Positions 32,253 through 51,180 of a DNA stretch of 64,000 bases are shown one piece after another. The stretch is from Selaginella moellendorffii (taxonomy: Eukaryota > Plantae > Lycopodiophyta), in the NCBI RefSeq assembly GCF_000143415.4, contig NW_003314380.1, forward strand, positions 206,924-270,923, in the 5' to 3' direction. The position numbers and the translations under genes are program-made. Each line of letters starts with the position of its first letter. Positions within the stretch are counted from its first letter, which is position 1. The notes beneath the pieces were generated by a model. It was not told the origin of the DNA. It saw only the letters and a list, made by a program, of their open reading frames with translations, and ran no database searches.

Positions 32253-32358
32253 ATCCACAAGAGATGGGACAAATAGGGTTTATGGTATGAGTTCCTATAG
32301 TTGGAAAGTATCGTTAGAGCCCTAAAAACAGAGGGTTTACTATACTCGGAAAGTGCCG

Positions 32359-33171
32359 TTATGACATGTTTACGAAAACAGGTTCCACGTAAGTGACAAA
32401 GCATATGGCCGCTAGGGCAGTCCCAAAGCCTTGTTCTACCTCGCTCTCTTGGATCATGAAATCCTCTTCGAAAACTTCGTAGTCCTCTTGATCGAATCGC
32501 CGCTTGAAAATGCCCTCCAGATCCTTCTGGAGGATTCTCCTGGCCTCCGATTCTCTGGCGTGGCCACTGTATTCCGCCGCATAGCCACCGATCACTGCGT
32601 TGTCTCGCTTTCTTCGAATCTGTGGATCCAAAGCTTTCAATGGGATCGAAGTTCCTGGAGAAAGCAGAGTGATTTCTTGCCTGAATGCGGGCAACTCCAG
32701 CCGTGATTCTGTCTCCCTTGACACCATTCATACTCGCCATGATCGCTTCCATCACCGCTCCATGCCGGAAGAATGGCTTTGCTTCATGGAACTCGATCTT
32801 GGAGGATTCCGGAGGGATCACTGACGAGTACTGCGTGATGTTAAAATCCATGATCCCTGGAAGAACGCGTGTCAGCAACAATCCAATCGAAAGAGGGAAA
32901 GCATACCAGCCGATTCCAACGCTAGATCATACGATCCAGTCTCCCAGGGATCGGCACCATCGCCAGCATCCGTCTGGCCAAAGCCCTTCACCATGAAGTA
33001 ATGCTTGGGAATCCGCGAGCCAAACAAAACCCCGTGCCCGCCGGCGACCAGCTCCATGAAATTCAGCTTCATCGCCTCCTCCCTCGAATGCGCGTGCCGC
33101 AATCCCAAGTTCTTGGGCAGCGGCTGGACATTATGCTTGGAATCCATCGATTCCAGCCCCTGCTGCGCCAT
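32359..33171 (-). CDS. Pyruvoyl-dependent arginine decarboxylase proenzyme (PdaD/AaxB family), 3 exons
   Basis: RIPKHYFMVKGFG...SYDLALESAG-IMDFNITQYSSVIPP (self-cleavage S-S site)...HGAVMEAIMA...ITAGV...GGYAAEY...FGTALAAICF. Introns at 32857-32906 (GT-AG) and 32620-32680 (GC-AG). Confidence 0.88.
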
Positions 33172-33399
33172 TTCCCTGCAAAAATTCACACACAAATCTA
33201 AAGAGGCTAGATCCTCGCGGAAAAATCGACAAGAGAGCAAGCAAATCGATCGACCAAACCTTGTGGAAGAATCGACAAGAAAAGCAAAACGATCGATCCC
33301 AAAACCTCAAAACGTTCCTCGTTAAATAATCTTCTCTCTTTCTCTCTCCAACAAGTGTCCATTGGACAACAGGAGCCACGTGTCAAACAATGCGCTGAG

Positions 33400-35271
33400 T
33401 CAGCAAGCACCAATATTCGTGTTAGCCAGGAGGACGTATGCCGCGCCATCGTCTGGATGTAGATCTAGAGCTCCAATCGCTGCCCTAGCGCCGCGCTCGC
33501 GATCGCGGTAGCTCCTGGAAGCACCCAGCAAGCATCGCCACTCCAGGACATTGGGAACAAAGGGCATGCTCGCGATCAGCTCCTCGGCCTCGTCTAGATG
33601 CCCAGCGCGGCACAGCAGATCGACAACGCAGGTGTAATGCGGCTTCCTCGCGCCCAGATTGAAATCCATCGCCATCGACACGAAGATCGATCGGCACAGC
33701 GCGAGCTTGCCGGCGTGGACGCACGCCAGCAGCGCGAACGAGAAGCAAATCTCGTCGGGGCGGACGAGCGCTTTCATCGCATCAAAGCTCTCTAGGGTTT
33801 GAGCGTAGTGGCCGTTCTGGGCGTGGACGACGACGATCGCTGCCCACGCGATCGTGTCGGGCTCTGGTATTCGATCGAAAATCCGCTTCGCGAGGTCGAG
33901 GTCGCCGCTCTGCGCGTAGCCGACGAGCATCGCCGTCCAGGAGACGACGCTTCGCTCCGGCATGGAATCCAGAAGAGCTTTGCTCGTTTCTATTTGCCCT
34001 AATTGGGCATTTGCGGCAATGAGAGTGTTCCAAGAGATTAAATTGTGCTGTGGCATTGTGAGAAATATCCAGTGGGCGTTCTCTACTTGACAACTTTGTG
34101 AATATGCTGCTAGCATGGCGTTCCACGACACTAGGTTTTTCATGGGCATGAAATCAAACAAGTGTTTAGCCTTTACCAAATGCCCGTTTTGGGCATATGC
34201 TGAGATCATGGCTGTGGAGCTAATAACATTCTTCTCCGGAAGAGATTCATAAAGATGCTCGGCATTTTCTAGGTCATCGTCTTGGGAGTAGGCAGTTATC
34301 ATAGCGGTGGCAGAGACTAGATTTTGCTCCGGCATTCGATCGAAGAGTCGCTGGCACTCGCCACGATGCCCGCTCTGGGCGTATGATACGAGCATCGCGT
34401 TCCAGGAAATTAGGGTTCTATGTGGCATTCGAGCAAATATTTCCGAGGCCTCGGCCAGATTCCCGCTCTGGCCGTAGGCAACGATCATCGCGGTCTGGGA
34501 GATCACGTCGTGCTCCGGCATGGAATCGAAGGCGTCCTTGGCCAGATCGAGCTTTCCCTCGTTCGCGTAGCCCGAGAGCATCGCATTCCACGAGACGAGG
34601 TTTCTTTCTTCCATGGCGTCAAATATTTGCTTCGCCCTCTCGATCTGGCCGTTCTGCGCGTAGGCCGCGAGGATCGCTGTCCTGGAGATGAGATTCGGCT
34701 CTGGAATGCTGTCGAAGAGCTGGATCGCTTGCGCCAGATCTCCCTCCTGCGAGAATTCGGCCAGGAGTGCCGTTGTTGACACCGAATCCCACTCCGGCAT
34801 TTCATCAAAGAGCTGCTTGGCTCGATCCAGATGAGCGTTCTGAGCCAGCGTCGCGACCACCGCCGTCCACGACACGAGATCTCTCAGCGGCATCGCGTCG
34901 AAAATTCTCAGTGCCTCCTCCGGATTGCCGTCCCTCCCGATCGCGGTGATGAGCGTGTTCCACGACACAACGTTCTTGGAGGGGAATCTCGAGAAGAAAG
35001 CCCTGGCGTCGTCGATCCGGCCGTGGTGCGCGTAGGCCGCGAGCATCGCGTTCCAGGTAGCGAGATTCCGGAGCGGCATTTCGTCGAAGAGATTCTTGGC
35101 ACTGACGACATCGCCCATCCGGGCGTAAGCCGTGATCATGAACACCCATGAGAAGGAGTCCTTGATCTGGATCCGATCGAATACCCGTCGCGCCTGGTGG
35201 AGATCTCCCCTCTTTCCCAGCAGCTCGATCAGCTTATTGCTCGCGAAGGTATCGTGGGAAATATTGCTCAT
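33400..35271 (-). CDS. PLS-class pentatricopeptide repeat protein with E domain (no DYW), intronless
   Basis: Tandem 31-aa repeats (A..LFD.MP.RNLVSW.AML.AYAQ.G), then HYTCVVDLLCRAG...MPFVP and a truncated E domain ending AYVLLAN. Confidence 0.95.
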   Translation of the reverse strand: MSNISHDTFASNKLIELLGKRGDLHQARRVFDRIQIKDSFSWVFMITAYARMGDVVSAKNLFDEMPLRNLATWNAMLAAYAHHGRIDDARAFFSRFPSKNVVSWNTLITAIGRDGNPEEALRIFDAMPLRDLVSWTAVVATLAQNAHLDRAKQLFDEMPEWDSVSTTALLAEFSQEGDLAQAIQLFDSIPEPNLISRTAILAAYAQNGQIERAKQIFDAMEERNLVSWNAMLSGYANEGKLDLAKDAFDSMPEHDVISQTAMIVAYGQSGNLAEASEIFARMPHRTLISWNAMLVSYAQSGHRGECQRLFDRMPEQNLVSATAMITAYSQDDDLENAEHLYESLPEKNVISSTAMISAYAQNGHLVKAKHLFDFMPMKNLVSWNAMLAAYSQSCQVENAHWIFLTMPQHNLISWNTLIAANAQLGQIETSKALLDSMPERSVVSWTAMLVGYAQSGDLDLAKRIFDRIPEPDTIAWAAIVVVHAQNGHYAQTLESFDAMKALVRPDEICFSFALLACVHAGKLALCRSIFVSMAMDFNLGARKPHYTCVVDLLCRAGHLDEAEELIASMPFVPNVLEWRCLLGASRSYRDRERGARAAIGALDLHPDDGAAYVLLANTNIGAC

Positions 35272-46664: not shown

Positions 46665-48661
46665 TTAGCTTGGGGTGAAAGTGGCGTTCTTCATGCCCCA
46701 TAGCGCGATGGAGGCGTCGATCGGGGCGCTGCCGTTGTTGAAGAGGAAGAGGCGGGGCGAGCCGCTGGTAGGGTACACGCGGGAGGTAATGCAGGCCCGT
46801 CCGCCTTGAAAGAATGTCTCGATGAGCGAGTGATCTACCTGTGGAGCACGCAGTCAGTGAAATCAGGCCTTTCTTTCGGGTCTTACAATCACTCGCATCG
46901 TGAGCTGCTGCTCTGTGCCGGTAACGTTCACGAATCCTCCGTATGCTGTTTTTGTGACATTTGGCTGTAGCGACGATCTAAAGGAAATGTTTTGGTTTGA
47001 TCTCTCTCGGATAATTTGGGGGTGGATTACCTTCGAATGTCGCTGCAAGCAAGGGGCTTCCAGCCCGACTTCGATCTCAGCAACGCGAAGTAGATCGCAG
47101 TGTGTTCTTGGAGATAATCCGAGGCTAGAACCATTAGTCCAAATGGTCCAACTGCTTCTCTTGATGCGGTGGTGCGACCAAGGCATGAGGTTTGTCCGTC
47201 TTCCATGATGCTGTCGAGGGTGACTAGCTTGTGATTTCTTACAGTGAAGGTGACCTCGATGTCCAGCTAAAACAACGCACGAGAAGCTGGAAGAAATGAA
47301 AGAGAAACAATAAAAGGTTGAGCCTAGGAACCTGAAAGTTCTTTCTGCCGCTATGTATCTCCTGCAACGCGCCACCTTGAAGCTTGAGGTGAGCCTGTGA
47401 ATGGTAGTCCCGTCGACGCAGTTTATACACTTCGGCTACTGGCCACTGTCTAACTCCATTTTGGTGTGTTTCATCCAGCCAGATTTGTCTCGGGAGTGCC
47501 TGGCACAACTTCAGATGAACAAGAGGTTCTCACAAACAGTTTCTTCCACATACCTGGACGCCGGCCCAGCCTTTGGCAATATCAGCCTCAGCGCTGTCTT
47601 TCTCAGTGACCCATCCCCAAAGTACGCGTCTTTGCTTCTCAGGGTCGTAGAACGTCTTGGAAGCGTAGAAGACGCCGTGATCGTAAACGAGGCCTAATCC
47701 AGTGTCCAGCTCCGGGACATTGGGTATGAACTTATCGGCCGCAGCATCGTAAGTTCCTACAGTATAAGCATCTTGTCTGGTATTATCCAAGCTGACTTTG
47801 AGTACGTGTTTCACTCCAGAACCTCTGACTGAATCCTCCAAGCCTTTTGTTCCGAAGGATGAAACGGGATAGAAATCCGGGCACTCCCACATCCCGGTTC
47901 CAGCAACCTCATGGAGCGGATGGTCCGCCAAGTTCCAGTGAACAAAGTCTTTACTGGTGTACAGGATTGCAGTTCCGGTGGTATTCTTCTTTGCTCCCAC
48001 CAGGATTCTCCAAAGCCCGTCGGCACCAATCCAGGCCGTGGTGGGATCTCTGAAGTCTACTGTTCGCACGCCGGAGGGTGGTGGAAAGATGATCGGGTTC
48101 TGCTCCAGTTTCTTCCAGGTTCTAACCAGCGGATCCGAGATGTTTGCAGGCACAGCCTCGTTCTGCGACTGATCTAAGTTGAGCGCAGAGCCCGTGTAGA
48201 GAATGACCGGCACTCCCTTGACGAAGGTGATGGAGCCAGAGAAGGCACCGTTTTGGTCGTAAGGCTTGTCTCTTTGGAGAGCCAGGTCGAGGAAGCTCCA
48301 GTTGATGAGGTCCTTGGAGACTGCGTGTCCCCAGCTGATGTTTCCAAATACTGGCGCAGTGGGATTGTACTGGAAGAAGAGGTGATACAATCCTTTGTAG
48401 AGCATCGGTCCTGGCTTAAGTCCATGAGGTAACGATCTTTTCTTTCTATTGTTTTCTTACCATTGGGATCTTTTGGGACAGGAAAGAGGAAGAAGAACGT
48501 ACACATACAAGGGTGGCTTTTACTTGAGTGACTCTAGAAGTTATAATTTTACCATTCATCCAGTTCTTGATGGGTTGGAAGTGGAATGCAGGGCGTAAGT
48601 CATCCCCCACAGACGATCCTGCAAGCGATAAGATGATTATTATCAGAAGCATAGCCGGCAT
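46665..48661 (-). CDS. Acid (cell-wall-type) beta-fructofuranosidase, GH32, copy 1
   Basis: Signal peptide, FHFQP, WMN-DPN-G with a 9-nt mini-exon at 48461-48469, FRDPTT, WECPDF and a C-terminal ITSRVYP. Confidence 0.95.
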
Positions 48662-48753
48662 TATCGTGAGCTCTCACACAACTGGTGGAGTTGAAAGGCA
48701 AAAGTTGGTGCAACCATCTTTTTTAGCTTAATCAGGTAAATCAAATACGGGAG

Positions 48754-48763
48754 AAAAATAAAA
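48754..48763 (-). terminator. Candidate RNA Pol III T-run terminator downstream of the tRNA
   Basis: Minus strand reads TTTTATTTTT about 20 nt past the tRNA discriminator base. Confidence 0.5.
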
Positions 48764-48783
48764 GCTGAACATTTTTTTCTTCG

Positions 48784-48857
48784 TAGGGATGACAGGATTC
48801 GAACCTGCGGCCGTTTGTACCCAAAACAAACGCGCTACCGAGCTGCGCTACATCCCT
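48784..48857 (-). tRNA. trnP-UGG: tRNA-Pro(UGG), chloroplast-type sequence (trnP-UGG)
   Basis: AGGGATGTAGCGCAGCTCGGTAGCGCGTTTGTTTTGGGTACAAACGGCCGCAGGTTCGAATCCTGTCATCCCTA folds as a cloverleaf (acceptor AGGGATG/CATCCCT, anticodon stem TTTGT/ACAAA, anticodon TGG). It matches the land-plant plastid trnP pattern, not cytosolic tRNA-Pro. Confidence 0.93.
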
Positions 48858-49379
48858 GGCCGCAATTTCCAGTGCCGGAATGCTGCCCCAGGCGAACTTG
48901 TATGTTAGCAAAACAGTTTTGAAACTCTTGACAGGTTCTTTCCTGCTCTTGTCAAACAGCTTTCAAATCCTTCGAAAAAGATCGGGAAAGTGAAAGTAAA
49001 ATAAAATAGAATATTTACTTATGGTCATGGCCCATGGGGCATAAAACTTAATATTCATTAGTCTAAGTATTTGTTTTGGAGTGTTACCTCAAGGATTTGG
49101 AAATGTTGTGTGCTGTGCGTGTGTTGTTGCTGATTTCAAGGACGAAGGCTGCCACCTCTCTGGCTACGGGCAGGGCATAAATTTCACCGACAGTAGCCAA
49201 ATTTCCACTGGTACGAAAATTGTTACGGTCTTTCAAATGACATGTTAGGGTTTTAAATATATATATATCATCTATTATTTAATGATATCCTATCCTAAAT
49301 TTCTGCTTATACTTTTAAAATGAAATGCTTGAAACACTAAAAGATAAGGAGATTTAGGAGAGTAATTAAACAGGAGCCC

Positions 49380-51180
49380 TGTGTCAGAAGGTATAATTAG
49401 TGCCATCTAATGTGAAGGAATGCCAGGGCAATTGGCATGTTCAACAGTCTCCATTTTCCTCGTAGTAGACTTGGCAAAGTCTGTCCTCCAAAGGAGTAAG
49501 TGGTTTGAGCCATTCTTCAACTGTTGAATATAGGTGGTGCCCTCTTGCTTGATAGGTAGTTAGGATCCTTTGAGTGCTTTTGTCCTAAAGGCTAGTGTAG
49601 CTGGATGACAATTTCCCGTGTTGTGTTACTGTTTGTAGGTACTATTGGAAGCCCGTACCGGTTGGCTGTTTGAAAAGTGCATTCCATCCATTCTGCAGAC
49701 ACTTCGGTAATGTGTGCCAGGAGTAGATAATTGAGATCCATTCCTAGATCATGTTGTTCACGCAAACATGACGTTTTTTCTAAACCCATTTATAAATCCT
49801 TGCTGTTTAGATCCAATTTGCTTGGAAGATCATATACCCCAGAGATTTATACCTCATTCCTTTATGTGTTAGAGATAATCTCTTGTATCCAATCTGTCTT
49901 GTGAGGTTGACCACCAACCCTCTAGAATCTCAAGTTGTCTTTGAAACAAAGAGCAAGTGGATGTGAGGGGTAAGAGATCATTCACATACAGAAAGTATAG
50001 GTATAGGCTAGCCATTTGTATCACTGAAAGATGGTGGTCAGTGAATAATGTTTCGATACATGCTGTGTGGTACTTCGCAAGTGGAGAGGAGTTCAACGGA
50101 GCGGGTCCGGTGGAGGCGATGGGAGAGAGGACTTTGGAAAGCGATGGGAACGAGCTATGGGACAAAATCAGTCCAGTAATATATAGTCTCAGAAGAGTTG
50201 GCGAAAGTAGACAAACTTGATTAACTCTTATGGTGATAAGAATAAGTTCTTATCCAGCAAATGACTTCATAAAGTGCCAAAACTGCCTGGATTATACTTA
50301 ATGGTGTCTCTATGATCCTGTAAACTTTGTCTTGGGACAGTATCAAATGCTTTGTGACAATCGCTAAATAGTCATTTAGGCCTGAAACCCGCTTGATTTT
50401 TCAACAATACGGGCAAACATCTGAGACCACTATGGTGTGGTGATTTTTAGGAAGCATCACCACTTTTATAGATTGGAATAATGCAGTTTACTGTCCACTT
50501 TTTTGGGAAGCCATTGCAGAGAACATCACCTAAGATTTGAGCGAGTATCGTTGCTAGGAGGTGTTGATCACAAGCTTGAAGTAATTCCATATCAACAGCC
50601 TTCCAAAATATGCTATATGCTTTGTTTGGAGTTGCCATACATTCTCGTTTTTTACGCTTGCATACTCACCGAGCTGCTTTGGCATCGGGTGCTTCAGATT
50701 GGGCCTTTTGCCTTTTGAATTGTATTCCATTGCTGGCATTCATCATTCCACCATGGGGAGTTGGGGATGCGGAATGGGGAATGAGCAGCTGTGGTGAGGA
50801 CTTTTATCAAAAGATCACCATAGTTGTCAATTGCCACCATAACTTCCTCACTTGTTCTGCATAGCGACTTCGCCGTTCTGCAATGATCTTGTATCTGATA
50901 GATGTGGGGAGCTGTTCATGAGCTGTAGTAGCTGGAGGATTTGTCAACGTCAATCCCAGAGGGCAGTGATCCGCAATCTCCAGGTCGGGGATTGATTGAA
51001 GATCCACTTTGTTTGAGGAGATTGTAGCCTAGTAATAGTGCCTAGTACCACGACCAGTGCGGCAAGTGAAACCCCCTGGGTGAGGGCAGTGCCGTGTTCC
51101 ATTTGGAATACTGTGGTGCAGGTCTTGGTCGTGTCATCCTGGGCAATTGTGGTAACAAAAGAGTTCTTCATTGTAGATAG
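49380..51180 (-). mobile_element. Decayed non-LTR retrotransposon (LINE) ORF2 remnant
   Basis: APE endonuclease end (GFTC..., DLEIADHCPL). RT motifs GFPKKWTVNCIIPIYKSGD, QAGFRP and D..KAFDTVPR, interrupted by stops and frameshifts. Confidence 0.8.

Follow-up and report, generated by a model that had tools for sequence, protein, structure and literature searches.

The locus described here raises the question of whether a chloroplast-type gene for tRNA-Pro(UGG), lying in nuclear DNA of the lycophyte Selaginella moellendorffii, is a working gene whose product is used in organelles or a piece of inserted plastid DNA in decay. The gene is situated in a stretch of 64,000 nucleotides, referred to below as the window, and positions are those of the window unless stated otherwise. 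An initial annotation, made from the letters of the sequence, had described a 74-nt cloverleaf of plastid type with an A1-U72 pair, and this description is borne out by ARAGORN, by Rfam and by plastid trnP-UGG genes retrieved for comparison. Over the 64-kb window, ARAGORN reports a sole tRNA, tRNA-Pro(tgg), at 48783-48857 on the minus strand. Rfam RF00005 matches 48784-48857 with 67.3 bits (E 1.7e-12), where the gathering score is 29, likewise on the minus strand, to which the tRNA motif of the annotation accordingly belongs. A permissive Rfam scan of the 64-kb window gave no further RNA family above threshold. The 74-nt cloverleaf has 21 stem pairs, none of them broken and all either standard or G-U; it is closed by A1-U72, carries the discriminator base A73 and has no encoded CCA. 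An intact tRNA-Pro gene of chloroplast ancestry is present among nuclear genes of S. moellendorffii, and its features are collected in Table 1.

Table 1. Coordinates of the tRNA-Pro(UGG) gene, its internal elements and its immediate surroundings in the window.
Feature	Position	Strand	Basis or remark
Plastid-type tRNA-Pro(UGG) gene, 74 nt	48784..48857	-	ARAGORN, Rfam, plastid identity, tree
Anticodon UGG	48821..48823	-	sequence index 35-37; wobble base at 48823, C or A in paralogues
A-box-like internal promoter element TAGCGCAGCTCGG, tRNA positions 8-19	48838..48850	-	read from sequence
B box GGTTCGAATCC, full match to the Pol III consensus	48795..48805	-	A replaces G at 48800 in plastid genes and CGG/AGG paralogues
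Downstream T-runs, candidate Pol III terminator	48754..48763	-	TTTT at +21..+24, TTTTT at +26..+30
Upstream 100 nt	48858..48957	-	no CAA in -1..-10, no TATA-like element

The comparison set was obtained by scanning metagenome contigs with a 25-nt pattern, taken from the 5' part of the tRNA, in which 23 bases were specified. The scan gave 120 loci with a tRNA-Pro at the expected place in 111, a set that is biased in that it requires the shared 5' pattern and includes no eukaryotic cytosolic tRNA-Pro. The best four matches are plastid genes. The gene on contig L014 is identical to the window tRNA at 68 of 74 positions, and those on contigs L033, L086 and L081 at 65-67 of 74. Contig L014 also bears psaJ and rpl33 ORFs and has trnW-CCA 136 nt downstream of trnP-UGG, while trnW-CCA is found at +166 to +180 on contigs L033 and L086. 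In all four plastid genes the acceptor, D and anticodon stems and the anticodon loop are identical to those of the window tRNA. All non-plastid tRNA-Pro retrieved reach at most 63/74 and have C1-G72 together with a different anticodon stem, and among the 111 retrieved tRNA-Pro it is only the plastid genes that have the A1-U72 pair and the anticodon stem in common with the window. Moreover, a maximum-likelihood tree unites the window tRNA, its two paralogues and the plastid genes in one clade with a support of 99/99, although its 74 columns resolve little else and the paralogue sequences in it were inferred from read differences. Plastid ancestry of the gene is supported by these comparisons. 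A bacterial origin was considered and rejected, given the C1-G72 pair and the other anticodon stems of all non-plastid tRNA-Pro retrieved. A mitochondrial origin was likewise rejected on account of the C1-G72 pair of the retrieved non-plastid genes and of an S. moellendorffii mtDNA that has no tRNA genes (PMC5654404).

The surroundings of the gene are of a different kind. The ORFs around it encode two PPR proteins, a kinase with a U-box, a B-lectin, a TAXi-type aspartic protease, a GH32 invertase and a TIR1-like F-box protein. The 468-kb scaffold GL377684.1 of NCBI assembly GCA_000143415.2, which we take to be the v1.0 assembly of S. moellendorffii, encodes the PPR ORF of 33400-35271 in identical form. 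From these nuclear neighbours and the identical PPR ORF it follows that the window is nuclear and not organellar, as had been proposed; provided that the window is colinear with the scaffold, the tRNA lies at about 255,707-255,780 of GL377684.1. A pyruvoyl-dependent arginine decarboxylase domain (PF01862) is found beside the PPR ORF, at about 32300-33200 (L121 3101-3872; public gene calls). The GH32 invertase gene shares the minus strand with the tRNA, and its start codon at 48661 stands 123 nt further downstream. Its exon structure, predicted by reading the sequence, comprises on the minus strand an exon 1 at 48661-48553, with a protein beginning MPAM, a 9-nt mini-exon ATCCCAATG at 48469-48461, which supplies D-P-N of NDPNG as in plant invertases, and an exon 3 beginning at 48410.

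Likeness to the plastome is confined to the tRNA itself. A blastn comparison of 47800-49900 with the four plastid contigs matched 48783-48857/8 only, the remainder being hits of 12-33 nt with E above 0.3. In tblastn with all ORF segments of the plastid contigs, 19 of 21 weak matches fell on the tRNA and no psaJ, rpl33 or other plastid protein was retrieved; the other two matches are short, lie off the tRNA and are at chance level (E about 0.003-0.004). Together with ARAGORN, these searches agree with the initial annotation in that the flanks are devoid of trnW and psaJ. Plastid-encoded trnP-UGG has trnW, psaJ and rpl33 as neighbours, whereas the window tRNA stands between spliced nuclear genes. 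An ordinary NUPT is likewise plastid-derived sequence within nuclear DNA, but it is normally a decaying stretch of plastome that has kept its neighbours and resembles the resident plastome. The window locus, in contrast, is plastid-like over 74 nt only, keeps every stem and has no copy seen at organelle depth. This bears on the possibility that the gene is an inert NUPT that still folds and yields no working tRNA, proline decoding in the plastid being served by CGG and AGG paralogues or by imported eukaryotic tRNAs. Against such a relic, the 74 nt are still 92% plastid-like with all stems intact while the flanks show no plastid likeness; in the plastid contigs trnW is only 136-180 nt away.

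The substitutions within the gene speak to the same point. Compared with the plastid gene of L014, the window tRNA differs at six places, all of them AT-to-GC; the variable loop has three of these changes, and the D-loop (T to C), the T-stem and the T-loop have one each. The T-stem change converts an A-U pair into G-U, and the T-loop change, A to G at position 57, gives TTCGAAT in place of the TTCAAAT found in 4/4 plastid genes, which is the plastid T-loop given in the initial annotation. It had also been noted that the acceptor and anticodon stems were spared, and indeed the six changes are in loops save for the one A-U to G-U in the T-stem. The chance that six substitutions keep all stems is P 0.023 under a uniform model and 0.084 when only AT-to-GC changes are allowed. 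This test against the plastid gene is only moderately significant and shares positions with the paralogue test given below, and the P of 0.02-0.08 for the UGG gene taken alone leaves some room for an inert copy. At the level of alleles, a contig from DNA run X8 (depth 214) covering 48300-48947 differs by an indel and by 9 listed substitutions (10 other letters), none of them in the tRNA, a zero that is not significant as about 1.2 would be expected. Contigs from run X11, labelled 'organism B', were discarded as a source of cross-species conservation; they are identical to the window and have no bearing on conservation.

Two further members of the family became visible when contigs of DNA run X8 were aligned to 48300-49100. 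One short contig of depth 232 and another of depth 281 depart from the window tRNA at 6-7 listed positions. At the wobble base 48823 the first reads A>G, giving the anticodon CGG (depth 232), and the second A>T, giving AGG (depth 281). The other differences are two in the D-loop, one at anticodon-loop position 38, one or two in the variable loop and one at T-loop position 57, with none in stems. All of the differences, 7 from AGG and 6 from CGG as listed, are therefore in loops, for which P is 0.013 with seven random changes. The bases that tell the UGG gene apart from its paralogues are C16, C18, the wobble U34, U38, C at index 45 and G57, at sequence indices 16, 18, 35, 39, 45 and 58. The UGG, CGG and AGG versions are each at a single-copy depth (214, 232 and 281, respectively), and no contig of run X8 at an organelle-like depth matched the tRNA at a likeness of at least 88%. 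Both paralogues retain the plastid A57 (48800 C>T) and the plastid A at index 45, and a derived G at indices 46 and 50 is common to all three genes. The changes at indices 46 and 50 thus predate the duplication, and G57 of the UGG gene came later. The avoidance of stems by all listed differences among the three family members speaks against an inert UGG copy, as does the fact that UGG is the only anticodon of the trio able to read all four CCN codons. Signs of selection rather than decay, as had been suggested at the outset, are supported for the window gene by the preservation of stems relative to both the plastid gene and the paralogues.

Several minor observations were made on related contigs. 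Runs of T5 or T10 begin about 8 nt downstream of the CGG and AGG paralogues. The AGG paralogue also occurs, in the tRNA-sense direction, on a 1,281-nt contig of depth 135, the type of which was guessed as RNA. About 3 nt upstream of the 5' end of the AGG tRNA this contig passes into sequencing adapter, and the junction suggests a defined RNA 5' end there. In addition, a 498-nt contig of run X8 at depth 8.9, compared with about 214 for nuclear sequence, bears, between AT-rich flanks, a sequence that resembles trnP with 7 differences; a contaminating foreign plastid (plant or alga) or a minor insertion could be its source.

Genes of this kind have already been described in a congener. The nucleus of Selaginella kraussiana harbours three plastid-like tRNA-Pro genes with the anticodons UGG, CGG and AGG (Berrissou et al. 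2024, PNAS, PMC11573648). Each of the three was found to be expressed and to be significantly enriched in purified chloroplasts, while the eukaryotic tRNA-Pro remains cytosolic; A and B boxes and a T-stretch are present in the genes, with a CAA motif in 2/3 (PMC11573648). The initial annotation was right that import of nuclear tRNAs into Selaginella plastids had been reported, and this is the work in question. Plastid trnP-UGG is stated there to be lost in Selaginella, the introduction describing proline tRNAs as lacking in most Selaginella studied (PMC11573648). For the plastome of S. moellendorffii (cited as FJ755183 in PMC3087542), 14 different tRNA genes are given (PMC6486807), and for the mtDNA of the species 0 (PMC5654404). 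The plastome of S. sanguinolenta retains 22 tRNA genes. The genus-level statement (PMC11573648) and read depth indicate that trnP is probably absent from the S. moellendorffii plastome, so a copy in the nucleus would not be recent, which is a further point against an inert NUPT, and the UGG counterpart in S. kraussiana is abundant and plastid-enriched (PMC11573648). No paper specifically on plastid-like tRNA-Pro genes of S. moellendorffii was found in the literature, and the main text of PMC11573648 does not name that species. The genes of S. kraussiana resemble the window gene in being nuclear, in descending from plastid trnP-UGG and in having A and B boxes and a downstream T-stretch, a likeness drawn from the published description. 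An upstream CAA is missing from one of the S. kraussiana genes and from the window UGG gene. The two cases differ in species, and in that expression and plastid enrichment, which were measured for S. kraussiana, are predicted for the UGG gene of S. moellendorffii.

The proposal that the gene has Pol III features holds in part. The B box and the T-run are present, and the A-box-like element of Table 1 can be set beside the A-box consensus TRGCNNAGTGG. Nevertheless, the two boxes carry little weight, as they are tRNA features nearly present in any plastid trnP, and the G that completes the B box is not in the paralogues. The T-run was downgraded as a Pol III signal, for a TTTT within 30 nt is expected by chance at a rate of 0.13 window-wide and 0.25 locally. 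Upstream, a search for CAA found none in -1..-10, the nearest being at -43, and a search for a TATA-like element in the upstream 100 nt found none, with 65% G+C in -40..-20. The consensus B box had appeared to be a possible adaptation; this was rejected, since A57 is kept by the CGG and AGG paralogues, expression is known for the genes of S. kraussiana and each of the six changes is AT-to-GC, so that compositional drift is enough to explain it. Taken together, the signals are compatible with Pol III transcription of the window tRNA but are no proof of it. An inert NUPT would also account for the missing CAA and TATA elements, and for a T-run of a kind that occurs by chance at 13-25% of places.

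RNA reads at the locus come from run X23, which consists of stranded raw reads of a poly(A)-type library. Every exact-match read over 48300-49000 has its first mate on the minus strand. Read joints at 48426>48480 and 48733>48785, both GT..AG on the plus strand after a shift by 2, define a spliced transcript of the plus strand that runs antisense to the tRNA and to the 5' region of GH32, with introns at 48429-48481 and 48736-48786 and an alternative 9-nt piece at 48692-48700. Its last exon extends from 48787 to about 49025 and covers the tRNA in antisense, and the splice acceptor of this exon is formed by sequence complementary to the 3' end of the tRNA and to the downstream A-run. Run X23 contained no GH32-sense reads, nor any tRNA-sense reads from the window locus, all 8/8 sense-direction reads over the tRNA carrying the letters of the paralogues. 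An inert gene would leave the same picture; as poly(A)-type libraries rarely capture mature tRNAs, however, the missing sense reads are uninformative rather than negative. In view of the structural, codon-reading and comparative points set out above, an inert NUPT is considered improbable.

The same reads bear on the manner in which the tRNA might be made. Instead of Pol III transcription, RNase P/Z might release it from a Pol II transcript, for example from a GH32 invertase mRNA with a long 5' leader. The shared orientation and close spacing to the start codon at 48661 would suit this route, as would the missing upstream Pol III elements and the occurrence of the AGG-paralogue tRNA in the sense direction on the 1,281-nt RNA contig. 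On the other hand, sense reads across the interval between the tRNA and GH32 were missing from the poly(A)-type run X23. Furthermore, both internal boxes, A and B, are preserved intact, and the genes of S. kraussiana are interpreted as Pol III genes (PMC11573648). Release from a Pol II precursor is thus regarded as very improbable.

The preferred explanation, to which a probability of about 0.78 is assigned, is that the window gene represents the UGG type within Selaginella's nuclear family of plastid-like tRNA-Pro genes and would be transcribed by Pol III, with part of its product imported into chloroplasts. As shown above, a plastid trnP-UGG gene stands in nuclear DNA without its plastid neighbours and has kept an intact cloverleaf. 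By analogy with S. kraussiana, for which the evidence came from tRNA sequencing of purified chloroplasts, RNA polymerase III would use the internal A and B boxes to transcribe the gene and would end at the T-runs 21-30 nt downstream, after which the precursor would be trimmed and CCA added. Part of the tRNA-Pro(UGG) pool would then enter chloroplasts that have no proline tRNA gene of their own and read CCN codons there. Import into mitochondria, which are without tRNA genes, and cytosolic use may occur as well. The interpretation given in the initial annotation, namely nuclear expression with organelle import, is very probably right in substance, its functional steps being drawn from the congener.

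A functional nuclear gene might also have a product whose main site of action lies outside the plastid, either in translation in the cytosol or in the mitochondria, which are devoid of tRNA genes. In total RNA of S. kraussiana the UGG and CGG tRNAs of plastid type match the eukaryotic ones in abundance, a finding suggestive of cytosolic use, and mitochondrial import is expected by the authors of that study (PMC11573648); the mtDNA of S. moellendorffii is without tRNA genes (PMC5654404). Nevertheless, plastids of S. kraussiana show a significant enrichment of the counterparts, eukaryotic tRNA-Pro being cytosolic (PMC11573648), and any plastid without trnP needs an imported tRNA-Pro. A predominantly non-plastid role is accordingly improbable, and partial import into chloroplasts is retained as the preferred explanation. 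A more ambitious extension can be offered only tentatively, and as a whole it is doubtful. In this extension, the UGG gene would be the founder of one ancient transfer, triplicated before the split of S. kraussiana and S. moellendorffii; its product would serve three compartments and be the main proline tRNA of a trnP-less plastid and of the mitochondrion, and G57 would have been fixed for a higher Pol III output.

Organellar tRNA genes have rarely been transferred to the nucleus in functional form. Two cases are counted in a 2026 paper, in which the Selaginella tRNA-Pro is the first of only two known (PMC13128298). The gene described here is a further example of this published family and not a discovery, and no new question is opened by it, the phenomenon and the unknowns at the level of mechanism being already published. 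Its value lies in the second species. That a UGG/CGG/AGG trio also exists in another, distantly related Selaginella suggests an old transfer that has been maintained. With its reference genome, S. moellendorffii provides a second species for the comparison of sequences, flanks and synteny, which bears on the minimal expression signals of transferred tRNA genes and on the marks for chloroplast import. [quoted passage not shown]
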